In this document: in pieces, positions 10,285 to 44,350 of the stretch
How positions within the stretch are numbered: position 1 is the first letter of the stretch
Layout of the letters: every line of letters starts with the position of its first letter
NCBI RefSeq assembly: GCF_018977255.1
Contig: NW_024704843.1
Location: 1-64,000, forward strand
Direction: 5' to 3'
DNA length: 64,000 bases
Source of the DNA: Callorhinchus milii
Taxonomy: Eukaryota
Notes under the pieces: model-generated
Database searches by the model: none
What the model was told of the DNA's origin: nothing
The model's input: the letters and a program-made list of their open reading frames with translations, nothing else
Translations under genes and position numbers: made by a program

Positions 10285-10379
10285 ACTATGTTTGGATGCG
10301 GCTGACGTGGTGGAGCTGGAGGAAAGGTGTCTGATTCAGCATCGGATGAGGGTAGGAGGGACAAGGGAGTATTGAATCG

Positions 10380-16335: not shown

Positions 16336-16544
16336 NNNNNNNNNNNNNNNNNNNNNNNNNNNNNNGGAGACCACCTGGTGCTCTCTCAATAGACTCGGTA
16401 GTGTACAAGCGCCATAACCCGTCTTCGAGACCGTTCTGATCATCAGCCACGATGGCCCCTGAAGTTACAGGGACCGAAGCTGCTCACAGTGACTGACGTC
16501 AGACTGGAGCGGACTGCAAAGCGCTGCCGTTCCATTTCCATCTC

Positions 16545-23280: not shown

Positions 23281-23699
23281 AGTGTGCCCCATGTATATTT
23301 GACTGTACATTTGACTGTATATTTATTCGAAACAAGGAGATAGAGTTTTCCTGTCCTACTGTGAAATGCCTCAACAAGCGCATAATATGGTGTCTGCAAT
23401 GCAAATATTATTAACAATCAAGATAAAGTAATAATAATAAAATAATAATAATAATAAATTGGTCATTTCAATCCCCGACTGTATGTGGGCCCAGCTATAC
23501 GGATTTCTGCATCGCATTTTCCAACAACATATACAATGAATTCACTTTACAGTATATTATGTGAAGCGCGTTGACACGTCTTTTAGATGTGATCAGGCGC
23601 AAAATAAATGTAAGCATCATTACTAAGGTAACATGGTATTGTAAACTGGGGATTGTTGGCCTAAATACCCTGAGATATTCACTTTTGTATCAAATTAGA

Positions 23700-23880: not shown

Positions 23881-26799
23881 TAGCCTTGTAATCTGAGTTT
23901 GGTTCTCAATCGGGGCAATGAGCAAAATGAGCCATATTGATGGACAAAGATAAGGGTAACCTCAGCACTGAGACTGACAGAATAAAACAGTTTACTTATT
24001 TCCCAGCCCTTTGGTTTGAACATTCTTAGACATGAAATTTACAATAATTCCTGAATAATTAGGCTTCGTATTAATAGTCTCGAAAATATAATTTCAAAGA
24101 GCGTTTAGAGAGGATACATTTTATTAAATGAAAAGGTTCTATTCTGCAGTCACACTTGTTAACCATGTAGATGCTAATTTACAATAAAGCTTCCATGATA
24201 AAAACTCCAAGAGGTTATTTTCTCTGGTGTGGTTCACCTGCAATGTGTTTCAAATATTTGTTTTAATTCTCAAATTTACAACTTTTGTGGGAAGATTACA
24301 CTGGCAGACACTTTAAATATCCATGATATTTTAGTTAAACGTTAACTTGTAGAAGATGTAAGGTTTGATTTATATATATTCTGGCAATTGCCAACGGTCG
24401 GTTGTCACTTAAGATAAGTGCTGTGGTATGAAATATAACCCGATAATGATAAAGAGATTCTATTTCCATTGGAGAATCATATCTGATCCTTTGACAATTA
24501 TTTTATTTACACAGTCATAAGGCATGAGTGGAAAATACTCAGTGTTGCTTGGTGCAGTATTTTTTAACCTGTTTGTAGCAGAAGGTTTCGGGTCAGATTC
24601 ATATTAAGAGGAAACCGGTTAAAATTAGAGTCAGAAAGTACAGGTGTTTCCTGCAAATCAGAAAATGACTTCATTTCAGATTACCACGTGGCGATTAACA
24701 ATCATTTCTTTTAAATGTTTTTTGAACCGCAGTAATTGTGGCAGTAGGATTCAGTCCAGTGTTTGTTGCAGTTAATTTGTCTCATAGTTATCAATTGTAT
24801 GTACATTTGCTGTATTGTAATTTGGCTTTGGTTCTGGAAGCCAGGGGAGTTGTATACTTGTATACTTCTCATTGGTCCTGAACTTACTCCAGGTTGAAAT
24901 ACTTGGGAACAAAATATGGGAAGTCAGTCAAGCCTTTGTGGGTCAAGAGCTTTTCACGTCCAGAGGCCGCGTAAAACGGCTTTAAGGATTTACTGACAAT
25001 GGAGAAGGAACGACAGATCAAACCTTCAACTAAATAGCACTTCTGCAGCACAGCATTGCAGTGTGTTTCACAAACACAAATTTCATTACATTCAAGTCCT
25101 AATATGGGTTTGTGCCCAAAAGCTTCTGTCTCAGAGCAAGGAATTGTGACTTGTCCTGATACCCCTTCACCCATCTTGACTGTTTTTGTCGAACGATTAA
25201 TCAATTTTAGTGAAGATTCATATCCTTCAATGTGAACTGTAAGTTTAAAATGTCAAACACAGAGACTTCCTTCTTACAACAAAATCATCTGGTGGTTGAG
25301 AAGCTGAAAGTCAGTGTGCAGTGTGAGTGGGAGGTTTTTCAAAACATTAATGTACTGTCACATTTGTAACTGCTTTCAAGTGGGGCAAATAATTTTTCTC
25401 CTCGTTGGGCTCCTACTTTTATTGAATTCTATATCTTCCCAATTGCACATTAGCAATTATCGTGACAGTAATAAAATGGTAACATTTGGAAAACTGCTCT
25501 GCTTGCTAGATGTTTAATACGCTCCTTCCCAAGGAAAATATTGTTCAGCGTATCGCTATTATATGTTATCAGAGGCAGGCCAGGCTGAGGGTATCTTGTG
25601 TGCTCCAGTCAGCCAACAATTCAGAAGCTGCAGAGAGACTAATTGTGAATTCAGTCTGATGGAGGGATCCCCGAAAGAAAGTCAATGACCACTGTACAAA
25701 TTTCAAAAGCTGAGACCATACACAATCATAAACCATGACAGTGATCATTAGAAGGTGATATTCCATCTATATCTATAATATATATATATTCGTGCTACAG
25801 GGGCTAAACGGATTCAGGTCAAATTTAGGCACATTAGGCCCAAAATTCTATCGCATTGCACACTATGAGATTCATGTTGTTATCAATAACAATGATAATA
25901 ATCATTGTGTTTGGTTTAGTCCCTCTCACGTCACCAGGACCTTTGAAGAGGTGTCTGGCCCTATGTAGCAGATCAATTACCCACAGCAGGAATTTGGGCT
26001 GTATGATCTCCCATTGAGGTGCTGCCCGGCTCAGATTGTTCAGCTCAGCACAGGCAGGAGATAAAGCTCTGTCAGTGTATAAAATATGGTGCTATAAATA
26101 TTCTAACGCAGAGCTGCATGTTTCTATATTTAAATAGCCGTGTATCTGAAGCTGTTTCTGGGTGAGGGGCTGATGAACGTGGGACGGAAAAAAGCTGCTG
26201 GTCACCGGAGCGAAGAACCAACTCAAGCGGAACTGTCATTGCCATTTTTGTTCTCAGCAAAACTGTACCTGAAGTTACACGTTTCACTTAACAGCTCTTG
26301 TTTAATGCTGAGTTACTGGGAATCTGAATAATTTCGAAAGCAGCGGCAAGGCACAATTGACACAAAAGGAACAGGAAAGAGAGGAATCAAACAGCGCAAT
26401 TAATTTTAACATTTTTTATTGATGCTTCAGGTAAAAAATATAGAGAATCTGGAGATAGTATGAATGAGGAGCAGATACAAACATAGCTTCAGATTAAAAT
26501 CAAGGTACAGAGTACCACAGGCACTGTCTTTCTGTTTCATTACACCACACAAATAGTAATCACAAATAAAGAACATCAGAGGCGTGAATGTACCATTATT
26601 ATTCATTATTACCAAAGTCACAATGTAACACAAATTAGCAATAAGAAAGGCTTCTAAACTTCAGTTAGTTGCCTAAAAAAAAGTATACTTTCAGCGGATT
26701 TGTACAATGGGTGAAAATAGACATCACGTAATCTGTCACGAGGCACAGTTGTTACACATAAACGGACGCGACACACTGGTGAAGCTGATCTTAAGAAAC

Positions 26800-26808
26800 T
26801 CATTGTAT
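26800..26808 (-). CDS. Duplicate IgH TM2' exon (IQ*)
   Basis: ttttccag|ATA CAA TGA, paralogous to GTA AAA TGA at 31438-31446. AATAAA at 26415-26420. Confidence 0.7.
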   Translation of the reverse strand: MQ

Positions 26809-27289
26809 CTGGAAAATATAAGATATAATGGATAATGACATTTAAGCTTGTGCTTATTTTTGTCTCTATGTATCCGCACAGATACGCGCACAAACACGCA
26901 AACACAGACACAAACATACACATGAGTCCAACTGATTCTGTGTGAATCTGAGTTTGTCTGTTGGGGACTGAAAAAGGCAGAAAGCCTTCGACACGCTTCA
27001 TATTGTCCACAATAACTCACAGATACACTAAATCTTTAAATAACCATTGCCCCTTGCCTGTGTCCATAGCAGGTGAGCATATGCCAGGTGTGATAGGCTG
27101 TGTTGGGGTGACAGGATATTTTGATCACCCTACACACAGCCCAGTCACAAGGATCGTGGCCTGTAGTTGCAGGTTGAGATTCGCAGCAAAGTGGTTGCAA
27201 TGAGCATCACTATCAGGATTCCCATGGACCAAGTATTTGAAAGCAGCTGTTACACCACATCACGGCGTCAATGCATTTACTCTCCTCAC

Positions 27290-27411
27290 CTTAACGGTGG
27301 GGTAGTAGAAAATATTCAGGAAGAAGAAAATGATAAAGTTGGAAGCAGTAGGCCAGAGGCTGTCACATTGAACTGCTTGAAAACTTTCCAGAATTAACTC
27401 GATTGGGAAAG
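27290..27411 (-). CDS. Duplicate IgH TM1' exon, open frame
   Basis: tcctcacag|CT...AAG|gtgag, 122 nt, encoding (A)FPIELILESFQAVQCDSLWPTASNFIIFFFLNIFYYPTVK. In-frame 9-nt deletion relative to TM1. Confidence 0.8.
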
Positions 27412-27794
27412 CTGTGAGGACAAATTAGGGCAAATATCTTCAGAGCGAAATGAAACCTGAGTCAATTCTTATTTTTCCTGTTGAATTATTAATGTATTTT
27501 CAATTTAATAGTCAATCCATTTGTTAAGCTGCACAGAAACATATGCAGATTCTTCCAAACTTTTAATATGAAGAAAAATAAAGAAAACAATTGTTTTATT
27601 GTTTGTTCCTCTCAATTATAGAATTTAGAGAAGAATCTGTGGAACACTTGTCAAAAATTTGAGGAAATACATAAGGAAGGAAATGCTCCCATTGAGACTG
27701 TGCTGGTCGTAAAAGGACAGATCTACTCCAATCCTCCAATTCCACCTTCCAGTCTGTTCTATTGCAAGTTCACATCGTCACTGTTCAAATACCA

Positions 27795-27995
27795 TTTTGA
27801 ATTCCTTTACATTTAGATATTGAAATGATGAACAAGGCTGAAACTGATAGATTTTTAACAATAGAGGAATTAGGGGATATGGGGATAGGGCAGGTTATTA
27901 CAGTTAAGTCTGAAGATCAACCATGATCTTATCAAATGGCGGGGCAGGCTCGAGGGGCCGAATGGCCTAAACCTGCTACAAATTGTTATGTTCTT
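27795..27995 (+). mobile_element. CR1 3' end inserted in the distal duplicate only
   Basis: gatcaaccatgatcttatcaaatggcggggcaggctcgaggggccgaatggcct...ttatgttcttatgttct. Absent at the paralogous site near 32640. Confidence 0.85.
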
Positions 27996-28689
27996 ATGTT
28001 CTCGATATAAAATTCGACTGAGCTTTTATATTTCACGGTGATTTTCCTGGATGTTTTATAATCATTTGTCGCCTTTCACTGCATCATTCTTTCAAAACTG
28101 CAGTAAATTTGAAAGCTTGTATTTGCTTATCTTCCCTTTCTCTTTTACGATCTCTTTTTCGGGAGCAGCCACAATGTTTGAAGCGGATCCTCATCACTGT
28201 AACGTCAATCACAGGCGTCATCTTTCGTGATCTTTGTGAATCTGCCCAAAATCCTCTCAGCTGCTCGTATATCCTCTGTTTAATAAAATGCCCAGAACCG
28301 CACTCTGTACTCCACCCAGAATCCTGCTAACTTCATATTTAATTGACATTCATATTCATATTTAATTGACCTTTTGAAATATGGTCTATCGACCTATACT
28401 CCAAATTTTCCACACTGCCCTTAAACAGAAGATTTTCCTGCTGATTCAATAAACAACTGCAATTCCACTTTTCAGCCAATTGAGCTAAAAGATCTGTAAT
28501 TTTAAGCAATTGCTCATGTTGCTCCTGACTGTGACCCACACCACTATTATGCTATCATCAATAATTCTATAAATAGTAACATGTCGATTTCCAAACCGTC
28601 CATATTATAGTAAAGCAGTGGAGGATCCTGCAAAACCGTCTGTGTAAATGAACTAAAGCAATTCAGGATTAAATGTAACAGGATTCATT

Positions 28690-29410
28690 CAGAGCGATAT
28701 TGACTGTGTGTTGGCCTGGGTGAGCGTGAGTGTGTGTGTGTAGCCCTGGGTTGAAGTGAGTGGTTTGTGAGTGTATGTGGGCATTGATGGATGCGAGAGA
28801 ATCTGGGTTTTTGTGGGTGTGTGCGAATGTGTAAGGTCCTTGTTGAGTGTGAGTATACATGAGTATGTGTTCAGTTGTGTGTGAACCTGGGTGGATTTGA
28901 GTGTGTGTGAGTGTGTATGGAATTCGGTGACAGTGTGTGGGCCTGCATGGAATTTCTTATGTGACAGTGTGTGTGAGCCTGGAAGGAATTCAGTATTTAT
29001 AATTGTGTGGGAGCCTTGGTGGATGTGAATGTGTAGGTGTGGGATGCTGGGTGTGTGAGTGTAAGTAAGTGTGAGTGGGCCTGGTTGAGTGTGAGTGTGT
29101 ATGGAACTGGATGGAAGCCTATTTGTGTGAGTGTCTCGGGCTTAATGGATGTAAGAGTGAGTATGTGTTGTCCCCTGTAAGTGTGTGTGCGGGAGTGTGT
29201 GTGGACTTGTTTGGGTGCGAGTATGTGCGAGTTTGTGTGATCCGAGGTGGATGTATGAGTGTGTGAGCCTGGATGGATGGGAGATGGTGTCGGTTTGTGT
29301 GTGTCTGTGTGTTTGGGAACCTGGGTGGACATGTGAATGATTGTGGGCGTTTGTCGACATGATTGTGTGTGTGAGGGTGTGTGGATGTGAGTGTGAATGA
29401 ATGCGTTTAC
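28690..29410. repeat. TG-rich degenerate repeat (paralog at 33370-34030)
   Basis: Low-complexity GTGT/GAGT/GGAT tract at the same position in both duplicate copies. Confidence 0.85.
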
Positions 29411-29997
29411 TTACAATGTAAAAGTACGGCTAAGCGTGTGTTTAAGTGAACATTTTCCAGTACCCGGAACAGTTCTGTGTAAGAAGTATTTACTTTAAAG
29501 GAAATGTAGTATAAAAGGACGCTGCTTACAGCAGAGATGCTGTTGCATGCGGATTGCGATGCTATTCGGTGGAAATGAAAGTATCATGGAAAGGAACAGG
29601 TGTAGCTGACTTGTGCAATTCTAAATGAAACTGCAAATAAAATCTAGTCCTAGATTGGGTGGTAGCAATTAATGTAGATTAATTTGGGAGCATTAGCGCC
29701 TTTTTTTTGATCAACCCAGTTTCTGACACGTGTTAACTCATCAAACTGCTTAATAGCTCACATACCAATCTGAAAGTTCTATTAAATTGATGTTCAAATC
29801 GCCTCAAGGAAAGGATGTATCTCTCCTTATTATAGAAGTTGTCTGTGTAATTAGTTGTAAATCATGCCCTCTGTAGCTGACTCATCAGTACAACTGTAAT
29901 CTTTATTTGAGTTACTTTGTCATGAAACCAAACAGTCAATGCAATGGTAGGGAGGTGCATGCCTAAAAGATAAAGAAAAATAGTATTGAGAGACACT

Positions 29998-30106
29998 CAT
30001 TGACAGGCATTGACGGTGTCCTTCAGGACAAGGGAAATGTTTACAACACTCGATTTTCCGCTGGATTTATTAACCTTTCTGGTCAGGGTCTTCAGTGGGA
30101 ATGTTT
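29998..30106 (-). pseudogene. Orphan CH4 C-terminus plus secretory tail ([35 protein letters not shown])
   Basis: Paralog of 34617-34726. It has no splice acceptor, the internal TM donor GT is changed to GA, and AATAAA is kept at 29902-29907. Confidence 0.85.
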
Positions 30107-30746
30107 AGGCCTATTAGATCCAAAATACTATTGTATTGCAGCCCGTGAGGTTTATGTCGTTATCAATAACAATGATAAGTATCACTGTGTTTGGTTCAGT
30201 GTCTCTCACACCAGCAGGACGTCCCCATGATTTTCACAGTATGACCTGTGAAGAAGTGTATGGGCCAACGTCGCAGCAGGAATTTGGGCTTTACGGTCTC
30301 CAATTGAGGTGCTGCCCTGGTCAGATTGTCCAGCTCAGCACAGGCAGGAGATAAAGCTCTGTCAATGTATAAAACAGATTGCGCTCTCACATTGTGCTAT
30401 AAATACTCTAACACAGAGCTGCATGTTACTATTTTGGAATAGTCATGTGTCTGAAGCTGTATCTTGGTGAGGGGCTGATCAATGCGGGACGGAAAAGGCT
30501 GCTGTTCACTGGAGCGAAGAACCATCTCAAGCGGAACTATCATCGCGTTTAGTGTTCTCAGCAAAGCTGCAACTGAAGTTTGACATTAAATTCAACAGCT
30601 TTTGTTTAATGCTGAGTTACTGGGAATCAGAATAATTTGGAAAGCAACGGCAAGGCACAATTGACACAAAAGGAACAGGAAAGAGGAAACAAACAGATCA
30701 TTGAGATTGTAATATTTTTATTGATGCTTCTGGCACACAAGAGACG

Positions 30747-31076
30747 GTGTCCTGTAGCTCAGTGGTTAGAGCACTCGCTTTGCAAGTGAGAGACCTGAGT
30801 TCAATTCCAGGCAGAGGGCGAAACCTTGGGCAAGTTTCCTTACTCCACACAGAGCCTAATAATAATCCCTCCAAAACCAAAAACAATAATAAATTGGTCA
30901 TTTTGAATCTACGACTGTTTGTGGGACATTGCTGTGCGCAATTGGCTGCCGCTTTCGCCCAAAAATATACAGTCAATTCACTTTGCAGCGTGTTCTGTGA
31001 AGCGCTTTGGGACGTCCTCCCGACGTGAAAAGCGCTATATCAAATGCAAGGATTATTATTATTATTATTATTATTA
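30747..31076 (+). mobile_element. tRNA-derived SINE, full length, inside the TM 3' UTR
   Basis: Family consensus. Absent from the paralogous site near 26430-26445. Confidence 0.92.
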
Positions 31077-31437
31077 GAATCTGGAGATAATATGAAACCG
31101 GAGCAGAATCAAAGATTCAGCTTCAGATTAAAAAAAAGGACAAATTATCTCAGCCACTAACTTTCTGTTTCTTTACACCAAAAAAATGGGAAACTGCAAA
31201 TGGAGAATATCAGAGAGGCGTGAGAGTTAACAACTTCAGTTATTGTTACCTAAAGAAACATTTGTAAAATAAACGAACAATAACAAAAGCCACGAAAATT
31301 CAAGCAGTTGCACAACACAATGTTTAATTTAAGTGATTTGCACAATGAGTGAAAACAGGCAGCGCGTAATCTTTCACACGACGCTCTTGTTAAGCACAAA
31401 CGGACGGGACACATCGTTGAAGCTGATCTTTATGAAT

Positions 31438-31446
31438 TCATTTTAC
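31438..31446 (-). CDS. IGHM: IgM-type TM2 exon (VK*)
   Basis: tattttccag|GTA AAA TGA. Joins TM1 in phase 0 to give the KVK cytoplasmic tail. Confidence 0.88.
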   Translation of the reverse strand, partial: VK

Positions 31447-32086
31447 CTGGAAAATAGAAATAAAGATGCCATGATATTCAAGCTTGTGTTTATAAGTGTA
31501 TATCAATCCAAACAGGTAAACACGCACAAACAAACAAACATACGCCTCATAATAATCCCTCAAAAAAACAAAAAACGTTGATCATTTTGAATCCATGACT
31601 GTTTGTGTGACATTGCTGTGCGCAATCGACTGCCGCGTTGGCCCACAAATATGCACTCAATTCACATTACAGTATGTTCTGTGAAGCGCTTGGTGACGTC
31701 CTCCCGAATGGAAAAGAGCTATATCAAATGCAAGGAGTATTATTATTATCATTATTATGTACACACACACGGATACACAAGGGTCCAAGTGATTCTGTGT
31801 GAATTTGTATTTGTCTGCTGGGGGCTGACACAGACAGTAATCCTTGCACCTTGCCTGTGTCTATAGCAGTTGAGCACATGCCAGGTGTGTTCGGGTGTGT
31901 AAGGGAGATGGGATATTAGGATCACCCTGTACACAGCACAGTCACAAGAATCTTGGCCTGTAGGTAGAGTTTGAGTTTGCCAACAGAGTGGTTGCAATGA
32001 GCTTCACTGTTAGCCTTTCCATGCACCGAATATTTAACAGCAGCCGTTGCACGACATCGTGGCCTAAATGCATTTACTCTCCTCAC

Positions 32087-32217
32087 CTTAAAAAGAGTTA
32101 CGGTAGCGCTGTAGAAAATGTTCAGGAAGAAGAGGATGATGAAGGTGGACGCAGTAGGCCAGAGGTTGTCACACTGAACTTCTTGAAATCCTTCCAGCAT
32201 CATCTCGTTTGGCAAAT
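32087..32217 (-). CDS. IGHM: IgM-type TM1 exon
   Basis: cctcacag|AT...AAG|gtgag, 131 nt, encoding (D)[43 protein letters not shown]. This is the canonical IgH CART motif (LW.TASTF..LF...FYS.TVTL.K). Confidence 0.93.
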
Positions 32218-34616
32218 CTGTGAGGTTATAAAAAGGGAAAAATCTTCAGAGCGCATTGACAACTCAGACATTTCTTGTTTTTTCTGTTATACTATTAACG
32301 TATGTAGAGATTCCGAGTTAATTAATGGCTCTCTCCGTCTATTAAATAACACTTGACTTCATACCATTTCTTCCAAACTTTTAATTCAAAGGCAAATGAA
32401 GAAAAATATTATTTTATAGTATGTTCCTCTCAATATAGATTCCACGGAAGAATTTGAGGAACATTTTGGGAAGGCTCAATTTGTGCAAATGCAGAAAGAA
32501 GGAAGTTCTCCCATTGAGTCTCTGCTGGTAGTGAAAGGACAGATCTACTCCAATCCTTCAATCCTATCTTTCTTTTTGCCCTATTGCAAGTTCACATCGT
32601 CTCTGTTCAAATAATATTTGAAATTCCTTTACATTATAATGCTGAGGTGAAGATTTCTCTATTCTAAACAATTCTCGATATAAAAATCGACTTTGCCATT
32701 ATATTTTACAGTGATTTTACTGGACCTCTTATACCCATTTTTATGGATACTATCGCTTTTCACTGTATCAGCCTTTCAAAACTTAAATACATTTGAAAAC
32801 TTGTATTTGCTGATCTTCCCTTTCTGATTTACCTGCACTTTCCTTTCGAGAGCAGCCGCGCTATGTGAAGCTATTCCTCAACACAGTAACCTTTGTGAAA
32901 CTTCCCAAAACCCTCTCAGGAGCTCTTATTTCCTTTGTTTAATAAAATGCCCAGAACCGCACACTGTACACCACCCATAATCCACCCCTAATCCACCAAC
33001 TTAAATTTATATTTAATTAACAGTCGATTGCCCAACAAAAATGACAGGGTCCATTTTTACTCCATTTGATATGCGCTCCCATCGACTATTACTCCAGGTT
33101 TTCCACTCGTCACTTATAACAGAAGCCGTAACTGATATTGAACTGCAATTCCACTTTTCGGCCAACTCAGCCAAGGCGTCTGTAATCTTATACAATTGCC
33201 AAAGTTATTCCTGACTGTGTCTAACAACCCTATTAGACCATCATCTCTTTTATCATGGATAGCCATGTCGATTTCACAATCGTTAATATTATTGTAGGAA
33301 CCGGCACAAACGTCTCTGTAAATTAACTAAAGTAAATGAGGATTAAATTTAAAAAGGTTCATCCATAGCGCTATTGATTTTGTATTGGCTTGGGTGAGTG
33401 TGCGTCTGTGTGTGTGGTCATTCGTGGATGTGTATATATATGTATATGTGCGTGTTCCTGCATGTATGTATTTGTGTGGCGACATGGGTTGATGTAAGCG
33501 TGTGTGAGTGTCTGCCTTGGTGGATGTAAATGTGTCAAGTTGTCTGTGTAATTAATTGTAAATATGGGTATGTGAGTGTGTTTAAGTGTGCGTGGGCCTG
33601 GGTGAGTGTGAGCTGATGGGGGCCTGGATGGAAGTGGGTGTGTGTGAGTATCTGTGGGCCTTAATGGAAATCAGTGTGAGTCTGTCGTCCCCGGTAAGTG
33701 TGTGTGCGGAAATGTGTAGGGGCTTGTTTGGATGTGGATATAAGTGAGTTTGTGTGAGCCAGGGTGGATGTGTGAGTGTGTGTGAGTGTGTGTGGGACTG
33801 GGTGGACGTGAGTTTGCGTCTGCAAGTGTCTGCATGTGTGGACCTGCGGGGATGTGTGAGTGTATGTGTGTGTGGCCCCTGGGAGGATGTGAGTTTGTGT
33901 GTCTGTGTCTCTGTGTGTATGCGTGTGTGTTTGTGAACATGGGTGGACACGTGAGTGTGTGTGGGCCTGGATGGATATGATGTTGTTTGTCAGTATGTGT
34001 GGATGTGAGTTTGAATGAATGCATTTGGTTACAATGTCCATGTATGGCTAAGCTTATGTTTAAATGAACATTTTCCTGTATTCGGATCAGTTTCAGTGTG
34101 AGAAGTATATACTTTTAATGGAAATGTAGCAATAAAAAGCCGGAGTTTACGTCCGCGATGTTATTACACGTGGAATGCGATGCTATTCGGTGGGAAAGAA
34201 AATATGTTGAAAAGGAACAGGTGTAGCTTCACTGTGCTATTCTGAATCAAACTGCAAATAAAGTACAGTCTGAGTTGGGCTGTAGCAAGTAAAGTAGAAT
34301 AATTTCGGACGGGTAACTTTTTTTTGGTCACCCGGGTGTCTGACACCTGCAAACCCATCACGATGATTAAGAGTGTACAAACCAACCTGACTGTCCTATT
34401 AACTTGATGCTAACATCCCCCCAAAAATGGATGTATCTGTCCTTGCTATGGAAGTTGACAGTGAAGTTAATTAATTGCAAATCATCCTCTCTGTACCTGA
34501 CACATCAATGCAACTATAATCTTTATTTGAGTTACTTGTTCATGAAAACAAACAGCCAATGCAATGGGAGGGAAGCGGTTGCATAAGAGAATAGGCAACA
34601 TGGTATTGAGGGACAC

Positions 34617-35008
34617 TCATTGACAGGCATTCACGGTGTCCATCAGGACAAGGGAAATATTTACAAAACTCGGTTTACCGCTGGATTTATTAACGGATCT
34701 GGTCAGAGTCTTCATTGGGAAAGTTTCATGTCCGACCACACAGGAGTAGGAGTTTCCTCTGCCCCAGTCTCCGGCTGAGATGGACAACATGCTGTACATG
34801 GAGTAGTTGCGATCTGCACTGTCTGCCATCACATCAGTGTTCTTGTAGTTACTGCCATCAATCACCTGGTCATTCTCAGTCCACTGCACAAAGATCTCTT
34901 TGGGAGCGAAGTCCTTCACCAGGCAGGTGAGGGTGACAGACTGCTGAGCAGACAATTCTTCTGCCGACGGGAGGAGGAGATACACTGAAGGTCGTTTCAC
35001 GTGCTCCA
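34617..35008 (-). CDS. IGHM: IgM CH4 exon plus secretory tailpiece
   Basis: C1-set domain (LTCLVKDF, VQW, YSCVVGHE). Tail GKPSFVNISLVLMDTVNACQ* has N-I-S and a penultimate Cys, as in chondrichthyan IgM. Internal G|GTAAA donor for TM splicing at 34679/34678. AATAAA at 34522-34527. Confidence 0.93.
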
Positions 35009-35265
35009 CTGTTGAAAGAACACAATCGAATCAATACACTGAAAGTGGTCAATCAGAGAAAAGTTTGGAGCATAAGAGTCTGCAGAATAAGCTGAGATTG
35101 ATGTGTTTTTCTGTTCAGACTGCGTTCAGCTGTTTGTAATTGCAGGTGCGAATGGGAACACGGATGTTGATTGAAATCTCTCGACAGCAATTTATTATTT
35201 GCACCCAGTGGTTTTCCTATATTCTGGAATTATAATAAACACGTAAATTATTTTTCACTCCTCAC

Positions 35266-35577
35266 CTGTCTTCTTAAACGTCTTTTCTCTGATGGGAGAT
35301 GGTATATCATCATGGCTGGCTACACAGAAGTATTCTTTACCACTGTTCCAGTCTAATACAGAAATGTTTAATTTACTGATCACTTTCTGAGGCTCAGTGG
35401 CAGAAGTTTTCCCATATCCAGACTGCAAATGTGTATTTCCTTGTGTCCAAGTCACGTTGACATGAAGTGGTGCATTAACCACGACACATGTTAGCGTTAC
35501 AGAGGAATCCATCAAAACCTGTCGCTGTGCAGGTGGCAGGATATAGATCTTGACACCTCCAGAGGGATCCTCGCATT
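35266..35577 (-). CDS. IGHM: IgM CH3 exon
   Basis: ttctag|AA TGC...ACA G|gtgag, 312 nt, phase 1-1, encoding ECEDPSGGVKIYILPP...VTLTCVVVNAPLHVNVTW...YFCVASHDDIPSP. Resembles shark IgM CH3. Confidence 0.9.
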
Positions 35578-36248
35578 CTAGAAAAGTAAAAGAAACTTAG
35601 AAAGACAAAGAACAGCCCATTTCCAGAATTTCATATTGGGTCAAGTTAAGCAATGACCGCCCATGAAGATTCTCACTTTCTGGCTCATCTGACCGCAGAT
35701 TGTTGTTTCCTAATACAATTTTCAATCGTTGATGGAATAGTTTACTGGAAAGTTGAGCAATCCTGCCTGAAGCATTGCGTGATATTTGGCCTATTGATTT
35801 CCAATTCCCTCCGACGGACAACCGCTCATGATGTAACGCATATGATGGATGAGCTTTGACTGTGTTTATATGTATATCCGCCCTGCTTGATACAAATTGT
35901 GATCAGAAAGTTCAGTGGTAGTAGATGTTGAGGAAGCGGGTGGAATATGAGCAAAACCGCCACAATCCCGTGGACCTGTGAGTGATGCCTCAGCTCCTCA
36001 TGAGCAGTAGATCAGAAACATGATCTTTGTTGCTACCCACTGAATACTGCGTGAGAATTGGGGCCCGATTTCCTCATGCCGTAAAGATCAACAAAACTGG
36101 GAATAAGCTCGCTTGTGTGTTGTTCCCAGTGAAATATCCAAATGGGGCTGAAAGCAATGTATCAATAGAGCTCTCACCAGTGGACATTTGAAAGGAAACT
36201 GAGAGTGACGTTCTTGCCATGTGTACCAACTATTGCCGTGTTTCCCAC

Positions 36249-36569
36249 CTGAGGTGATGTTCTTGACAATGATGGTGTGGGTGGGTTCATGGGAAACCTG
36301 GCAGGTATAAACCGCGCCACTCCTCCACTCTCTGGCGGGGACAGTCAGGCGGCTGCTGGTGCTGAATGTCACGTTGTCTTCTTTAACCGAGGGAGAACTC
36401 ACAACACCTGAGGTGATGGGCTGCCAGTCTCTTAGCCATTTAACCCGGAGTATGTCCGGATGAAAACCAAATGCTAAGCAGACAGCAGTGGCCTGGTTGT
36501 GCCTGGTGATGTCTTCAGGGGAAGTTTGTGTGAGGATAACAACTGGCGGCGTTGGCTTAGGTACATTAT
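36249..36569 (-). CDS. IGHM: IgM CH2-like exon b (intact)
   Basis: ttccag|AT AAT...TCA G|gtggga, 321 nt, phase 1-1, encoding NVPKPTPPVVILTQ...ATAVCLAFGF...VKW...FSTSSRLTVPAREW...YTCQVSHE. Confidence 0.9.
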
Positions 36570-37293
36570 CTGGAATAGATTAAACGATAGGTCATGTTTT
36601 GCTCCATGGACATAAATATTGCTATGTGAAGTTTATACCAATATTGAAAAAAAATTGAGATCAGCCACGATATGGACACTTCTCACTCATTGACCTTTCT
36701 ATATTCCTAGTCAAGATAATCTTATCTTTTTTTTCCTTCAGAAAGATAGAAATTATGTAACCTACTCAATCACTGCTTTTGATATATTCCACTAAATCAG
36801 CAATCGGGAAATGAGTGTGGTACCATTAGACCGTAGAAGGTTTTCTGTGATGTCAGTGTTCAAATATCCTGGAGAAGAAAACTGAGTTGCCCATGTCTAC
36901 GATGCTGATTGTTCTACCCTTAACATTAATGATAATAATTATTGCTGCGTTCCATATAGTGCCTCATCACTTCCTCGGGACGTCTCCAAGTGCTTTACAG
37001 ACAATGCTGTCGTGTCAATTAATTTTTCTCTGTGGCTGAAACGAGGCAGCCAGTGGCGCCCAGGAGATACACCAACTCACTGACAACCCGGTCCCGACTT
37101 ACTGCTGGATAAGCAGAGGCGAGTGATGTAAAAAAAGTGCCCAACATCTTGCTCTGTCTGGGAAACGAATCCACGTCTGTCGCTTGCAACGCCAGGGCTC
37201 TAACCACTGAGCTACAGGCCTCCGGTGTAAATATCAAAGGACACTGAGAGCCACGTTGCTGCCATGTGTACCAGCTGCTGCTGTTCCTCCTAC

Positions 37294-37622
37294 CTGTTGG
37301 GGTGGTGATGTTCTTGACAATGATGGTCTGGGTGGGTTCATGGGACACCTGGCAGGTGTAAACCGCGCCAGTGCCCACTCTCTGGCGGGGACCGTCAGGC
37401 GGCTGCTGCTGCTGAATGTCCCGTTGTCCTCTTTAGCCGAGGGAGAGGTCACAACACCTGAGGTGATGGGTTCCCAGTCTTTCAGCCATTTAACACTGAG
37501 TTTGTCCGGACGGAAGCTGTTTATTGAGCAGACAGCAGTGGCCTGGTTGTGTATTTTGATTTCTGCAGGGGAAGGCTGTGTGAGGAACACAACTGGGGGC
37601 AATGGTTTCGGTTGTACATTCC
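37294..37622 (-). CDS. IgM CH2-like exon a (first C exon) with a 1-nt deletion frameshift
   Basis: tttcag|GG AAT...ACA G|gtagg, 329 nt (not a multiple of 3). Close paralog of exon b. The frame breaks at the G3 run (plus-strand ccc 37374-37376) just after REW. Confidence 0.88.
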
Positions 37623-38029
37623 CTGAAATACATTGAATAATACGTTATGTTACGTTAAAAATATATTGCGTTAGGTGTAATTGGTATTAATATGAAAACA
37701 GACATTGATCTCAACCATGATGTGGATACTTGCCTCTAATTCACTTATCTCTTTCAACCTTCCCAGTTCAAATTTATCTTTAGAAAAATAAACATTGCAA
37801 TCTCCTCAATCGTTTTGTCTGATGCTTTGCATTGAACTCTAAGCTGAGCTTGGAGTTGGCAACTCTTCTATTCCCCTTTCCCTGTTTGTCACGGAAAATC
37901 GTTAGGTCTTCTTCTTTCGAACTGAACCGCGTGAAATGATTCCTATTCCGTTCGTATCTGCACTTTATCTCCGAGAAAAGCAGCTCTCGGGAAATGAAGG
38001 CAACAGGAATAGGCCATTAAGCTAATGTC

Positions 38030-38230
38030 TGTATGGCTGTTTGTGTGTGTGTGTTTGTTTGTGTGTGTGTGTGTGTGTGCATGCATGAAGATCCCATGAC
38101 GTATTCAAAAAGAGATGGCAATTTCTCTCTCTCTCTCTCTCTCAATCTCTCTCACACTCTCTCTGTCTCTCCCCCCCCCCCCAACCCCCCAAACACACAC
38201 ATTCTCTCTCTCTCTTTCTCTCCAACTATG
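38030..38230. repeat. (TG)n and (TC)n microsatellites
   Basis: Direct inspection. Confidence 0.9.
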
Positions 38231-38676
38231 TCTTTCCATCTCGTTCTCTGTTTTCCGCGCCCTCGTCAACAATCCCCCCAAATAAAATCGGCCAAACTCT
38301 CTACGCCTGTTTGTGCGGATTTGCTTTACGAATCGGACTGTTGACGTTTTGGCCACAAAATTCAGTCAACGCACTTTACATTCAATCCTGTGATGCGCTT
38401 TGTGGCCTATCTCCGCCGTGAGAGGCACTGTAGCTAATGCAATGATTATTATTTTATTGGTGTGTTCATGTCTGTGTGCGTACTTGTTCCAGCAAAGCAT
38501 CCCAGCTGGAGTTTGTGCTGAGACCAAGGTTTTCATACATAACGGTTTAAGGAGAAATGTAGCCTTCATATATTTGTAATCTTTATCAACGTTTGTACGG
38601 CCAGAGCTGCACTGTGCACTTGTAGCGCGCGGTGAGGAGTGCGCTTTGTAGAGCAGCTCCTGAATTGGCTCCAACG

Positions 38677-39004
38677 TTATAATAATAATAATAATAATCC
38701 TTGCAATTCATATAGCGCTTTTCATGTCAGGAGGACATCCCAAAGCGCTTCACAGAACACACTGTAAAGTGAATTGACTGTATATTTGTGGACGAACGCG
38801 GCAGCCAATTGCACACAGCAATGTCCCACAAACAGTCGTAGATTGAAAATGACCAATTTATTATTGTTTTTGGTTTTGGAGGGATTATTATTAGGCTCTG
38901 TGTGGAGTAAGGAAACTTGCCCAAGGTTTGGCCCTCTGCCTGGAATTGAACTCAGGTCTCCCGCTTGCAAAGCGAGTGCTCTAACCACTGAGCTACAGGA
39001 CTCC
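38677..39004 (-). mobile_element. tRNA-derived SINE, full length
   Basis: Reverse complement of the family consensus. Confidence 0.92.
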
Positions 39005-39154
39005 ACGTTAAAAAAATTGCCAGTTTAAATTTAGTATCCCAATAATGTTGGCTCAAGTGTGACTTTTGTATGAGAGAGAAATTGCTAATTTACACAGCAG
39101 AGCATCGACTTCCTTTCCCTCTCTCTCTCTCTGTGTTTATCTCTGTCTGCCTGA

Positions 39155-39420
39155 CTGAAAAATAAATAAATAAAGAAATAAAGAAAGAAAGCAAAAAACA
39201 AGAAAGAAAGTAAGAAAGAAATAAAGAAATAAAGAAATAAAGAAATAAAGAAATAAAGAAATAAAGAAATAAAGAAATAAATCAAGAAACAAATAAAGAT
39301 ATAAATAAATAAATAAATACATGGATACATAGATGCATAGATACATAAATTAATAAATAAATAAATAAATGGTAAATAGATAAATAAATGAATAAATGAA
39401 TAGATAAATAGATACAAATC
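39155..39420. repeat. (AAGAAATA)n/(AAAT)n simple repeat in the J-C intron
   Basis: Direct inspection. The F/L/Y-rich ORFs over it are artefacts. Confidence 0.92.
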
Positions 39421-41616
39421 GATATATTAATGCAGAGCTATCTGTATGTGAACCTGGTGTCAGTGACTGTGCATCGACTGTGAAGAAACTCAAAGTCACC
39501 TCCTGACCAGTTTCAATTTTGAAACACGGAGCAACAGACGGTGGTTATAACGTTAATTTTAAATCATTTCAGGCCAAAATGTTCACTGGTCTTACGCCGA
39601 TTAACTTCGTTTTCAGAGTTAAAGTCGTGCGGCATTTAAAAAAACACCTCAAATAAAAATTTTGCTTCCATTTTCAAATCGTCCACTGGATTCACCAAAA
39701 AATATCGATCCAAGGATATTCAGACATGTGGATCATCTTGCGTTTTTATCCAATATTCCGAAAATTTTAAAAAATATATTTTTTCTTGTTCCGACATATA
39801 CTAAAACAAGTTACTCTGTTCAGATTGGTTACAGATTCGCCGCAGCCAATTTGCCACCTGTCAGCTGCTAAGTGGTATTAAAATAGTACATTAATTATTA
39901 ATAATAATAATTCATCCATTTGATATAGTGTCTTATCGACACTTTCGAGATATCTCAAAGCGTTTTACAGACTAAACTGTGAGGTGAATAGTCCGAAAAA
40001 TTTCAGGGCGGAAAATATTTGTTTGACTGTTGAAGAATTTTGGTCCCTGTTAAATATTTTGTCAACACAATTGCAGAGACCATATAATGGGCAGATTCAG
40101 TGTTCAGATGAGGAATGAAGGACTCTAATCAGTGTTGTGCCCAATACAAGTCTCTCACAGGGGATCCTGTCTGATTGGTGAATGTGACCTACGGAACCTG
40201 CAACAGCTGCTGCACAGCGCTAAATACAGACGCAGAAATAACCACATTTACGAGTAATTGTGTCACACAGCTGCACCGAAAAGGTTAAATAAAAAGAGAA
40301 GTCGCTGTCTTAGGATTTGTTGTCAATGGCGCTGCATTGCATTGCAGCTGCAAAACACGTTTACTTTCATATTTCGGAATAAAATAATCATATTATTTGC
40401 CTTTCATTTAGCGCCTGATTACATCTTCGAGAATTCGCAATGCGCTGCGCAGAATACACTGCAAAACTGTTGCTGGTAAATGTGCATCTGTTTCCTCTTT
40501 CCTGCACCCACGACCATTTTATCGTCATTGATCAATAAATTTTGTTCACATCTGAGATCCCAATAAACAACTATTAATAAACAACGAGAGATCATTATAT
40601 CTCTAATTTAAGATTTTGCGGAAGTGTGTAATAATCTTAAATTTACTTAAAATTTAGAGTACCGGTTCCTCTTCAGAACTCGAGTCAACCTCTTTCAGAA
40701 ATCAAACCGAATTTGACGATTATTCACAATTCTCCGCGAATTTACACTTTAGCACATGTTCTCCTTACAGCCTGAGGGACAATCGTAGCCCCATCTCGCA
40801 TCACAAACACAAAGTGTTTCCGTTCATTAACCCACACGTTACTCTATATTCTCTTTCTCTCTGAGAGACTGAAGGTTTCAATTACTGCACAGCAGCTCCC
40901 ACACTATCCTTCCACATCACACACATAGCATTATATATGATGCAATTTAACTCGGTCACAAATCCCTGCAGCACAAACACTTACATAGAATAACTAAATC
41001 ATATATTTACAGTCAAATGAGAAAAGGCCACTTTCACCCTCATCTCTGCCGACTCTGCAGTTTGAGATGATCTTCTCTGAATTCACAAATTTGGTATCAC
41101 TGATCAGTGTCGCTGTGCGTTAAACATCTCAATGAACAAATGGTAAGGTTTGAACAGCAGGCTCTTGCACTGCAGCTGGATATGTTACATTGCAGCCTGC
41201 TGTGCAAACTTTACCATGTGTTTATTGAACATATCTGTGTTTTTCTACACAACGTTTATTACAAAACAGGAAGTTGATGTTTACAGATCAACAACGACCC
41301 CTTGTGTCTCTGAACACTGTGAGAAATCGAGGTCCTGTTCACTCAATCGCTGTTAAAATCAAGTGAAATGAAGTCAGTGCTTAAGGTGTCGCTGAATAAA
41401 ATCGTGACCGATGTATGTGGTGCAGCTGAAGGAATGAGATTGTGAGCAACACATTAGTGCTGATAATAAAATAATGACCTTCACTATTATTTCTGTAACA
41501 TTGGAGTCGATTGAGCTGCTGTATTCTCAATCACATCACTGCAATATAAACCGCTTTATTCTCAGTGTCATCCCCTACGCATACGAGTCATTCTAAATCG
41601 CAACCAATTTCCTTAT

Positions 41617-41953
41617 GTTAAACAATGGATTTAAATACATAATAATAATAATCCTTGCATTTGATGTCGTGTTTTTCGCATCTCTTTGACGTCTCAAAGC
41701 ACTTCACAGAATAGACTGTAAAGTTAATTGACTGTATATTTGTGGGTGAAACGCGGCAGCCAATTGCGCACAGCAGTGTCCCACCAAAAGTCGTGATTGA
41801 AAATGACGAATTTATTATATTACTGTTTTGGTTTTTGGAGGGATTATTGTCAGAAATTGTAAGGAAACTTTCCCAAGATTTCGTCCTACCTTGAATAGAA
41901 ACCAGGTCTCTCGCTTGGAAGGCGAATACTCTAACCACTGAGCTATAGGACGC
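41617..41953 (-). mobile_element. tRNA-derived SINE, divergent copy
   Basis: Head, body and tail are homologous to the family. Confidence 0.85.
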
Positions 41954-42373
41954 CACACAGTTATTCTCAACTGCTGTTGGAAGCGATCAGATAACATTCC
42001 CATCACTCATCCCACCACATTTCTGGCCCTAATTCCCAAAGAATGGGCACAGTTTCAAACACTTTTGCACACTTAAACACCGAAACCCAGCAGCCGCCAG
42101 TCACCGCAATAAGAAAGTCCATCAGATTGACCTCTGCTGGATCTTCACAAACCACTAGAAATATCACCAACAATTACCTAAATATTGAGAGAGTAATCCA
42201 TAATGGAACAGTTGCTGTTGAAAGCAATAACAGATAAATACTTTCAAGTTGGATTAAAGTGTGAGATAGCCTGCAACACGGAGTTCATTACATTAACAAG
42301 CTGCTAAAGTGAAGAAAACGAATATATAAAGAGACCCGTTCACTGAAGTGAGTGAGTTAGTGTCTGTTCTTAC

Positions 42374-42427
42374 CGTCAGTCACCGTCACCGCTGTGCCTT
42401 GTCCCCAGTAGTCAGGGCTGCTGCAGT
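42374..42427 (-). other. IGHJ: IgH J segment (CSSPDYWGQGTAVTVTD)
   Basis: WGQG motif, G|GTAAG donor at 42373. Putative RSS: heptamer CACTGTG 42428-42434, 23-bp spacer, nonamer TCAACAACT 42458-42466 (non-consensus). Confidence 0.88.
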
Positions 42428-42803
42428 CACTGTGCTGCAGTCAGTGGGCTGCTCACTTCAACAACTGCTGAGTGGGCAGACCACATAAAAACAATATTGC
42501 TGTAAGTGTTGGCTTTCCCAAACCACACACAGATCACGATATGTGTCTGTCATGTTCTGAAAACAATTGCTCGGCTCTGCGTTTACCTTTTAAATGTTTG
42601 TGTCTTTGTCAGTTTGCTGTGTTCGTGCCAAACCACGTTTCTTCTCACCAACAGGTTGAAGAATAAATCCGATGTTTTATGTCGTTTAAAATCTCGTGAA
42701 ATCCTCGGGGTTCAGCAACATATTAGAAGAACCAAATCCCCGCAATTTCAGTGGGTCCCACACAAGCGAATAGTGAGAGAGATTAGCTGGTTTGTTGTTG
42801 AAG

Positions 42804-42869
42804 GGTTTTTGTATTGACAGTGAATGCTGTGGTTCCAGTATCACAGTGATACACAATGTGACAAAAACT
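42804..42869 (-). other. IgH D2 segment (ATACTGGAAC, 42832-42841) with 12/12 RSS
   Basis: Plus strand GGTTTTTGT-12-TGCTGTG-[D]-CACAGTG-12-ACAAAAACT. Confidence 0.9.
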
Positions 42870-43179
42870 GCACAAGACGGACTGACAAACACTGACGTGG
42901 AATTTGACATAAAATCTGGATCTCAGTTCAAATTCTCCAGTGAGGCCACGTGTGATGTTTAAGTCAAAATAAATTCTTATGTTCATCAGAGACTTTGGAT
43001 TCTTCTTAAAGCAGCTCAGCACACCTCAAATTTGTTTCGTATCGCACTGTAATATAAATTAAACTTAATTAATTTGCTAAACATCAGGTTATTTCCGAGA
43101 ATGACCCACGTTCAGTAACATTAATATGAGAGCTGTGGATGTTGTAGTGATGACAGTGATTATCATATTTTCTCTCTGG

Positions 43180-43257
43180 GGTTTTTGTATGAGGAGGTAA
43201 CTGTGTGCAGCATTGTGATCTGTTGTATACACAGTGATACAGTCCCATACAAATACT
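43180..43257 (-). other. IgH D1 segment (TATACAACAGAT, 43218-43229) with 5' 12-RSS and 3' 22-RSS
   Basis: Plus strand GGTTTTTGT-22-CATTGTG-[D]-CACAGTG-12-ACAAATACT. Confidence 0.9.
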
Positions 43258-43671
43258 GATCCCCCAATGTCTGCTCCACACTGACAGCCAAAATTTACTT
43301 GAAGGGACTATTCCCCTCTAACATGACACAGAGGATATAGATTAGTGTTTTGATATCCACAGAAACAGAAAGCAATTATTTCCATCACCTTGTAACAAAA
43401 TGATGTTTGTGAACCGTAACATAGACAGTCTCCATTCGCAATCCTTCCCGCCTCAACAGCACAGTGTCACTCACCATCTGAAATCACAGAATAATGCAGC
43501 ACAAATAAGGAATTCATTCACCCCAATCAAACCACGATTCACTGTGTAGGTTTAGTCTGAGACTAAATCCATTTTCAGCTTCTCCTTTAAACTTGGCTAC
43601 AGATACAGCATTGACCCCATGGATGTCCATCAGTCAGTTTAGGGTGGGAGGGGCTGCCTTTCCTCCCCCTG

Positions 43672-43710
43672 TGTATTTGTAGAAGTTCAGCCCAGTTCCC
43701 TCTCACTGTG
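43672..43710 (-). promoter_or_regulatory. V 23-RSS
   Basis: CACAGTG, 23-nt spacer, ACAAATACA directly after YYCGAY. Confidence 0.93.
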
Positions 43711-44022
43711 AGTAAGCTCCACAGTAGTACGTCGCGGTGTCCTCCACTCTCGGGCTTTTGATGATCAGATCGAAGATGTTATTGGAATTCTCTCTGACGA
43801 CAGTGACGCGGTTTCCAACACCGGACTCGAAACTGTTGCTGGATCTGTAGTCAGAAGTCAGGAGCTTTTCCCGCTGCTTCCCGGGAAGCTGCCGGTACCA
43901 GTACATACAGTAGTAGTAGCTGTCGTGATCAAATCCGCTGGTTCTGCAGGTCAGTCTCAGGGACTGGCCGGTTTTTCCGGTGAGAGTCGGCGGCTGTGTC
44001 AGCGACCCGCTAGCCTGGACAC
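43711..44022 (-). CDS. IGHV: IgH V exon, single-domain (VHH-like) type
   Basis: ttacag|GT GTC CAG GCT...; open frame SGSLTQPPTLTGKTGQSLRLTCRTSGFDHDSYYYCMYWYRQLPGKQREKLLTSDYRSSNSFESGVGNRVTVVRENSNNIFDLIIKSPRVEDTATYYCGAY. Canonical Cys, Trp and YYC are present. Confidence 0.93.
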
Positions 44023-44138
44023 CTGTAAGGAATAAAGCACTGAAGATGAGTGATGGTGAAATCTCCTGTCTCTGTCACATTGCAAGGAGAACAGTTCCCA
44101 CACAGCAAAAGTGAGAACGTCAGAATAGTAGCACTTAC

Positions 44139-44184
44139 AGGAGAAGGCAGCCAGCAGCAGACTGAGCGAAATGAGGAATTTCAT
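44139..44184 (-). CDS. IGHV: IgH leader exon (MKFLISLSLLLAAFS+C)
   Basis: 46-nt exon with GTAAG donor and a 116-nt intron, in frame with V. Resembles shark VH leaders (ISLSLLL). Confidence 0.9.
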
Positions 44185-44275
44185 GCTTCTCGACACTTAT
44201 CAGAACTCAAACCTGTGCCGAATAACCGAGGGCCAGAGAGCAGCCGGACAGTTGGCCTCATTCCCCAGTGACCGC

Positions 44276-44350
44276 TATTTAACAGAGGCCACTGGGTCAG
44301 GGGTTTGAGAATCAACCAATAGATCCAGGACTGAGGGGAGTGACGTGTCA
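44276..44350 (-). promoter_or_regulatory. Putative VH promoter: TTAAATA (44276-44282), CCAAT box (44316-44320), CRE/TCR-beta-decamer-like AGTGACGTGTCA (44339-44350); no octamer seen
   Basis: Motifs lie 90-170 nt upstream of the leader ATG. Chondrichthyan VH promoters are known to lack the octamer and carry a TCR-beta-like decamer. Confidence 0.5.

Follow-up and report, generated by a model that had tools for sequence, protein, structure and literature searches.

The 64 kb of Callorhinchus milii (elephant shark) DNA analyzed here, referred to as the window and supplying all coordinates given below, contained an immunoglobulin (Ig) cluster of the IgM type in which no exon for the first constant domain, CH1, was found. 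This C. milii locus very probably (at roughly 85%) belongs, as a single germline cluster, to the CH1-less IgM family of holocephalans known as the 'holocephalin heavy-chain-only antibody'. The variable (V), diversity (D1 and D2), and joining (J) segments formed a germline, unrearranged array, and a second CH2-like exon (exon A), which is frameshifted as assembled, stands in the position of CH1. All parts of the cluster were on the minus strand:

44139..44184, minus strand: leader exon of 46 nucleotides (nt), MKFLISLSLLLAAFS, with a split Cys codon and a GT donor.
43711..44022, minus strand: V exon, a V-set domain (Pfam V-set E = 1.9e-16) of the heavy-chain variable (VH) type, with an extra Cys in complementarity-determining region 1 (CDR1).
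43672..43710, minus strand: recombination signal sequence (RSS) of V, with heptamer CACAGTG, a 23-nt spacer, and nonamer ACAAATACA.
43180..43257, minus strand: D1 with its RSSs, coding sequence TATACAACAGAT at 43229-43218.
42804..42869, minus strand: D2 with its RSSs, coding sequence ATACTGGAAC at 42841-42832.
42374..42466, minus strand: J and its 23-spacer RSS, with the RSS at 42466-42428 and the coding sequence CSSPDYWGQGTAVTVTD at 42427-42374.
37623..42373, minus strand: intron between J and the constant (C) exons, 4.75 kb, with short interspersed element (SINE) copies and an AAAT microsatellite, and without a CH1 exon or remnant.
37294..37622, minus strand: exon A, CH2-like and in the CH1 position, a C1-set domain of 329 nt, frameshifted as assembled.
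36249..36569, minus strand: exon B (CH2), 321 nt, intact, phase 1 at both ends, Pfam C1-set E = 3e-21.
35266..35577, minus strand: CH3 exon, 312 nt, starting ECEDPSGG, with one hinge-like Cys.
34617..35008, minus strand: CH4 exon with the mu secretory tail, GKPSFVNISLVLMDTVNACQ followed by a stop.
32087..32217, minus strand: first transmembrane exon (TM1), intact.
31438..31446, minus strand: second transmembrane exon (TM2), encoding VK and a stop.

The absence of CH1 was examined in several ways. When three chimaera CH1 domains, two from C. milii heavy chains and one from Hydrolagus colliei, were used as tblastn queries against the whole window, only weak, generic C1-set matches were obtained, on exons A, B, and CH4, and there was no match below E = 0.1 in the J-C intron or elsewhere in the window. 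A hidden Markov model (HMM) of six cartilaginous-fish CH1 domains, run with filters off (--max) on all stop-to-stop pieces in the six frames of the window, identified none beyond the known constant exons, and a scan of the window for the Cys..Trp..Cys motif of a hidden CH1 was also negative. A maximum-likelihood tree built from 31 domains placed both exon A and exon B within the IgM CH2 clade (support 96/96), with the CH1 clade separate (support 100/99). Exons A and B scored 122 and 160 bits with the CH2 HMM, compared to 38-49 bits with the CH1 HMM, and neither contained the light-chain cysteine motif of CH1 (LLPxCG; LLPYCG / LLPTCG). The possibility that exon A is a diverged CH1 was rejected, since it groups with CH2 and is without the light-chain cysteine. 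The central observation of a preliminary description of this DNA, that there is no CH1 and that the first two constant exons are both CH2-like, is correct because the CH1 searches were negative, exons A and B belong to the CH2 clade, and the CH1 cysteine is absent. With the exception of CH1, every feature of a conventional cartilaginous-fish IgM cluster was present.

Framework region 2 (FR2) of the V domain also set the cluster apart from conventional IgM. It read WYRQLPGKQREKLL in the window, while conventional elephant-shark cDNAs and ratfish and shark VH had WVRQVPGKGLEWLL. At the positions that contact the light-chain variable domain (VL), V37 was replaced by Y, G44 by Q, L45 by R, and W47 by K. 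Ten related V domains (nine C. milii models and the database protein P0086) had Y, F, or K at position 37, Q at 44, R or Q at 45, and K, N, S, Q, or I at 47, whereas six conventional VH domains from C. milii, H. colliei, and sharks had V or I at 37, G44, L45, and W47. The FR2 split between CH1-less and conventional V domains was clean and family-wide, and the VHH-like hallmarks that had been noticed in the window V were confirmed (Y37, Q44, R45, and K47), with the same pattern in its ten relatives. The polar FR2 of the window family agrees with criterion 3 of the four that have been set out for heavy-chain-only antibodies (PMC3149040, in which Feige 2009 is cited). The structural reading as a whole, a mu-type cluster with a second CH2-like exon instead of CH1 and a VH-derived V with a polar former VL interface, likewise corresponds to the criteria of that essay.

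Judged by its sequence, the window V is VH-derived, with FR1 and FR3 typical of cartilaginous-fish VH. It was a full-length VH covering V-set positions 1-92, and its best matches in the Protein Data Bank (PDB) were VH; its score in the PDB sequence search was 65 bits against VH but about 30 against VL chains, in a ranking that was dominated by multi-domain chains and that separates VH-type from VL-type only.

The arrangement of the RSSs would allow rearrangement. The 5' RSS of D1 had a 12-nt spacer (AGTATTTGT..CACTGTG) and its 3' RSS a 22-nt spacer (CACAATG..ACAAAAACC); both RSSs of D2 had 12-nt spacers (AGTTTTTGT..CACTGTG on the 5' side and CACAGCA..ACAAAAACC on the 3' side). The J RSS had a weak nonamer, with a score of 12/16. 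Across V, D1, D2, and J the spacer order was therefore 23, 12-22, 12-12, and 23, which is the classical layout of a shark IgM cluster and forces three joins, V-D1-D2-J. Both strands of the whole window were scanned for RSSs with a threshold of at least 14/16 consensus positions, and all six of the matches found were inside the V-J interval (42831-43710), compared to a chance expectation, from block shuffles, of 0.08 matches per window. The RSS signal in this interval is not due to chance. The leader-V-D1-D2-J order with 12/23-compatible RSSs given in the preliminary description was thus reproduced, with each segment and its RSS mapped and all of the strong matches located here. Flanked in this way, the V, D, and J segments would allow the cluster to make a diverse repertoire of single V domains.

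The constant region was of the mu type. All four constant exons had AG/GT borders and Pfam C1-set domains, the CH4 exon contained an internal G|GTAAAC donor after 34679 for the membrane form, and AATAAA was found at 34527-34522, 90 nt downstream of the CH4 exon. The four constant exons, IgM secretory tail, and transmembrane exons described previously could all be mapped, with TM1 and TM2 intact. Conventional elephant-shark IgM (AFM90331.1, AFK11405.1) shares with the window a cluster-type VH (52% identical), CH2, CH3, and CH4 (68%, 65%, and 85% identical, respectively), the tailpiece, and the transmembrane core; the C-terminus encoded by TM1 and TM2 had a single mismatch, N for S, to the membrane cDNA AFK11405.1. 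Conventional IgM differs in having a CH1 with the LLPYCG cysteine and the conventional FR2, neither of which is present in the window. Between exon B and CH2 in an elephant-shark model that includes CH1, identity was 82%.

Comparison of the V and constant exons with protein databases, which had been proposed as a check, was carried out, and the closest matches were all from C. milii. The V exon protein was identical to UniProt A0A4W3GEP3. Exon B alone matched A0A4W3GV19 at 110 of 111 residues, and exon B together with two stretches of intron read-through matched it at 146 of 147. These two matches indicate that the window is C. milii DNA and represents the same locus as these entries, or a very recent duplicate or allele. 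The CH1-less family is multigenic: several models of the exon B type were 92-99% identical, and a more distant subfamily was 66-79% identical. The C. milii paralogs (A0A4W3GC02, A0A4W3GBJ7, A0A4W3JAA6, A0A4W3GK68, and others) had the same FR2 hallmark and a CH2-like domain after J, shared the intron start GRR.SSS of exon A, and were 92-99% identical in their constant exons within the nearest subfamily. One of them, P0095, included a paralogous exon A with this same intron start and, unlike the window copy, an intact frame.

In related database proteins, in-frame junctions were observed both from J to a CH2-like domain and from one CH2-like domain to another. P0086 (UniParc UPI0000114065) had the FR2 hallmark of the family and consisted of a rearranged V-D-J joined in frame, by splicing, to a domain of the exon A type; from its early UniParc number, it is probably the ratfish cDNA of 1998. 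P0093, which was 100% identical over 64 amino acids to a C. milii model, contained two successive CH2-like domains, the first ending ..NITTPS and the second following it without a break in the frame. Conventional CH1-bearing C. milii cDNAs were abundant in the nr database, and no full-length cDNA of the CH1-less type was found in the protein searches whose length window would admit one.

A further paralogous CH1-less cluster outside the window, represented by P0004 and P0006 (A0A4W3GC02 and A0A4W3GBH7), had V-D-J as one continuous reading, YYCGARSHDYADYWGQGTKVTVTD, followed by just one CH2-like domain. Such a model points to a heavy-chain-only cluster that is germline-joined in the C. milii genome, or else to a modeling artifact; the window cluster differs from the P0004 type in being unrearranged.

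The class to which this cluster belongs is already known, as the preliminary description had stated, and its genes are in public annotation. A CH1-less IgM cluster was first described in the spotted ratfish Hydrolagus colliei (Rast et al. 1998, Immunogenetics 47:234, as summarized in PMC3149040). The 'holocephalin HCAb' (heavy-chain-only antibody) was named in a 2011 PLoS Biology essay, among the convergent single-domain antibodies, and its protein had not been examined as of that year (PMC3149040). A 2025 paper made use of a 'single-domain Hydrolagus IgM V' (PMC12227049; references 73 and 74). According to the elephant-shark genome paper, the species has no IgNAR, and the main text of that paper is silent on IgM and CH1. 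The suggestion that this is a possible third natural single-domain scaffold was therefore not a new idea, being found already in PMC3149040, and the V domain itself was already in UniProt as A0A4W3GEP3.

The ratfish cluster is the closest known system. Like the window, it is of the IgM type with separate V, D, and J segments, and it has lost CH1 and carries a duplicated CH2-like exon in its place. P0086, probably from ratfish, has the FR2 sequence WYRQLPGKQR and a J spliced to an exon-A-type domain ending ITxPT. The differences are that the species is another one, that V identity to P0086 was only about 62-65%, that P0086 has neither the CDR1 Cys nor the J Cys of the window, and that exon A is frameshifted in the window copy; this comparison depends on the 2011 summary and on P0086.

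Camelid heavy-chain-only antibodies are IgG encoded in a translocon locus, in which the gene retains a CH1 exon that is skipped because its donor site is mutated. The window cluster resembles VHH IgG in a predicted protein without CH1, in the FR2 changes at positions 37, 44, 45, and 47, and in an additional Cys in CDR1, which might form a bond with CDR3; the llama-type FR2 is WYRQAPGKQRELVA, to which WYRQLPGKQREKLL of the window is close. Its isotype is mu, as seen in the constant exons and tailpiece, its organization is that of a cluster, and its CH1 exon is absent rather than spliced out, all of which differ from camelids. The two have independent origins. With IgNAR, the window shares a cartilaginous-fish cluster gene, a proposed light-chain-free dimer, a single V domain, and non-canonical cysteines. 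The IgNAR V is without C'-C'' (CDR2), and IgNAR has three D segments and IgW-like constant domains (PMC3149040), while the window has a full-length VH, two D segments, and mu CH2, CH3, and CH4 exons. The independence from IgNAR and camelids that had been proposed is thus consistent with a mu-type cluster that has no CH1 exon, a full-length VH, and two D segments.

How such a cluster would function can be predicted from established antibody biology, including the four criteria mentioned above (PMC3149040). RAG would join V, D1, D2, and J inside the cluster, and the transcript would splice J directly to the CH2-like domain, followed by CH2, CH3, and CH4. A chain without CH1 would have neither the light-chain cysteine nor the domain retained by BiP, and might leave the endoplasmic reticulum without a light chain, with a single V that would be soluble because the former VL interface is polar. 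Dimerization of the heavy chains is expected via the Cys at the start of CH3 and via CH4. The mu tailpiece would provide a secreted, possibly polymeric form, and TM1 and TM2 a membrane form that could serve as a B-cell receptor. Light-chain independence, polymerization, and expression of the window copy are all predictions of this kind.

Several points weigh against the assignment of the window locus to a heavy-chain-only family in working order. As assembled, exon A ends in the wrong phase, so that J-A-B runs into a stop within exon B, and no alternative donor that restores the frame was present within 4 nt of the end of exon A. Translation of this copy therefore fails in exon A, and its reading as a rearranging nanobody-type locus hangs on one base. 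The database searches revealed neither a transcript nor a protein of the exact window cluster, and exon A was in none of the Ensembl models of the window-like subfamily. P0093, the protein with two successive CH2-like domains, may come from gene prediction and not from a cDNA. The Ig octamer (ATGCAAAT or its complement, with at most one mismatch) was not found in the 400 nt upstream of the leader ATG (44185-44584, minus strand), where the sole promoter-like element was a TATA-like TTAAATA about 97 nt upstream of the ATG; the absence of the octamer was counted as weak evidence only. Finally, no demonstration of light-chain independence for a chimaera protein was found in the accessible literature.

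The defect in exon A was small. Its length of 329 nt, compared to 321 for exon B and 312 for CH3, was one base short at GAGTGGGCACTGG, in a G-run at 37376-37374. Exon B reads GAGTGG-AGGAG-TGGCGCGG at this point and exon A reads GAGTGG-GCAC-TGGCGCGG, with one base fewer. The last 27 codons of exon A, including the second structural cysteine, are out of frame as a result. The ratio of nonsynonymous to synonymous substitution rates (dN/dS) between exons A and B was 0.45 before the shift and 0.45 after it, the latter from only 24 codons. Adding one G gave EWGTGAVYTC, which may be compared to EWGSGAVYTC in P0013 and P0091. Since the rest of the cluster is intact, dN/dS is 0.45, and one G rescues the reading, the defect can be attributed either to a homopolymer assembly error or to a very recent inactivating mutation. 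Overall, the copy is a genuine and unremarkable representative of a family already known, and it may be a pseudogene or the site of an assembly error. The preliminary description had presented a complete unrearranged IgM cluster and a rearranging, mu-derived, nanobody-type locus. Every listed element was indeed present and unrearranged, and the locus is mu-type and CH1-less with a polar V, but completeness and function do not extend through exon A, which is frameshifted and leads J-A-B to a stop.

There is nearly an even chance that the deletion is real and that the cluster is a recently inactivated pseudogene in an otherwise functional CH1-less IgM family. Pseudogenes are common in the Ig cluster families of cartilaginous fish, and in addition to the frameshift and the downstream stop, the gene models of the nearest paralogs all begin at exon B, the octamer was not found upstream of the leader, and the 3' end is duplicated and decaying. 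Against inactivation, this lesion is the only one in some 2.2 kb of coding sequence. The splice sites and RSSs are all intact, as are both Cys/Trp cores and the V, J, B, CH3, CH4, TM1, and TM2 exons. In addition, the codons after the shift still look constrained in the correct frame (on only 24 codons), and the lesion lies in a G-run, where sequencing undercalls occur too.

It is quite possible, at somewhat less than even odds, that the cluster is functional and that GGGG was undercalled as GGG, in which case the sequence of exon A would be ...PAREWGTGAVYTC..., giving a chain of four constant domains (CH2-like, CH2, CH3, and CH4). An assembly error would fit a one-base lesion in a G-run, the match of EWGTGAVYTC to P0013 and P0091 once a G is added, the intact remainder of the cluster, and the scattered Ns and short gaps in the window, of a kind usual in draft assemblies, although slippage mutations occur at G-runs as well. 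Single Ns were located at 6036, 8044, and 22324 and runs of N at 16336-16365, 60371-60517, and 61216-61240, none of them within the Ig cluster. They suggest draft-quality sequence, which bears on whether the G-run of exon A is in error.

It is improbable that the frameshift is real and that exon A is skipped to produce a shorter V-CH2-CH3-CH4 heavy-chain-only IgM with three constant domains. J joined to B-CH3-CH4 does give an uninterrupted open reading frame with correct phases, and the paralogous Ensembl model P0004 has a single CH2-like domain after J, but the splice choices in P0004 are odd and may be an artifact of modeling, and default splicing should include exon A, given its good polypyrimidine/AG acceptor and its GT donor. 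Least probable of all is that the chains still pair with light chains through V alone, with the CH2-like exon as a replacement spacer, for although J has kept W103 (in WGQG) and the general VH fold is preserved, the four VL-contact positions are polar or charged family-wide where conventional VH of the same species keep V/G/L/W, and the CH1 light-chain cysteine is absent.

As a member of the CH1-less IgM family, the window cluster bears on the evolution of single-domain antibodies. After the VHH of camelids and the IgNAR of sharks, chimaera CH1-less IgM would be a third, independently evolved route to an antibody that binds through one V domain, suggesting that the combination of CH1 loss and a polar FR2 arises readily, and it could supply another small binder scaffold. 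To this the window adds little: one fully mapped cluster, a warning about the frameshift in exon A, a decaying duplicated 3' end, and a pair of cysteines in CDR1 and J.

The cysteine pair and the state of exon A are the only leads that might be new. CDR1 (FDHDSYYYCMY; 43950-43915) was two residues longer than that of conventional VH and contained the extra Cys. In J, which has a GT donor of phase 1, the Cys near the 5' end was in frame as codon 1, with AC TGC AGC AGC CCT giving CSSP and the segment (42427-42374) reading CSSPDYWGQG... The CDR1 Cys was common to five related C. milii V models (P0081-P0084 and P0112) and was not found in P0086 or in V of the P0004 type. A disulfide between CDR1 and CDR3 could form if trimming of J spares the Cys codon. 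It is conceivable but unlikely that the FDHDSYYYC-type V subfamily hard-wires a CDR1-CDR3 disulfide like that of camels or of type II IgNAR, which together with the mu tailpiece would yield a polymeric, light-chain-free IgM with many single-domain sites. No report of the CDR1/J cysteine pair or of such a polymeric assembly was found in the accessible literature, and the cysteines may be covered by Anumukonda et al. 2022 (Eur J Immunol 52:247). That paper, on heavy-chain-only antibody genes of fish, probably covers the C. milii paralogs, judging by its title, and is said to have the elephant shark as its subject.

The 3' end of the cluster was duplicated. The region 25825-30104 was a tandem duplicate of 30105-34724, the two copies being 4.3-4.6 kb in length and 70-80% identical, and the duplication spanned the last 35 codons of CH4 through TM2. 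SINE insertions at 30745-31076 and 31544-31758 were present in the proximal copy only. The distal copy has decayed:

25825..30104, minus strand: decayed 3' duplicate, with a CH4-tail remnant, TM1', and TM2'.
30104-29997, minus strand: CH4-tail remnant covering the final 35 codons of CH4, in which the TM donor is lost.
27411-27290, minus strand: TM1', with a 9-nt deletion in the membrane helix.
26808-26800, minus strand: TM2', encoding IQ and a stop in place of VK and a stop.

The preliminary description had put the lower coordinate of the cluster at 26800, which is the stop codon of the decayed TM2', the intact transmembrane exons being at 32217-31438. The lower third of the range that it assigned to the cluster was occupied by the decayed tandem duplicate at 25825-30104.

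The Ig cluster stood alone amid GPR139-like receptor genes, debris of SINEs and long interspersed elements (LINEs), and minisatellites, a position that fits the dispersed-cluster organization of cartilaginous-fish Ig genes. An intact, single-exon open reading frame for a rhodopsin-family G protein-coupled receptor of 335 amino acids was located at 54936-55940 on the plus strand, and its nearest solved structure was GPR139 (E = 2e-9). A related receptor copy at 2-913 on the minus strand had an in-frame stop at 488-490 and was cut by the edge of the window.

Arrays of a 22-nt minisatellite, CAGTCCAGTCATGTCACCATTA, were found on either side of the cluster, at 16544-19118 (117 copies) and 58042-59218 (53 copies), and further arrays with units of 18 and 48 nt were at 48098-48618 and 49688-50560. 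These arrays account for the strong GC-skew blocks in the composition profile.

One SINE of about 330 nt, presumably tRNA-derived, was present in many copies, with the translation ..SSVVRALALQ..DLSSIPGRG.. and with some pairs 93-95% identical. The approximate positions of the copies were 3820-4180, 10116-10400, 12372-12790, 13311-13640, 13744-14300, 22345-23300, 30745-31076, 37019-37230, 38722-39030, 41618-41960, 46196-46525, 52386-52709, and 57107-57520. One copy lay directly 3' of the exon A donor and two were in the J-C intron. Fragments of LINE reverse transcriptase (Pfam RVT_1), interrupted by stops and frameshifts, were identified on the plus strand at 7392-7925 and 10306-11350.

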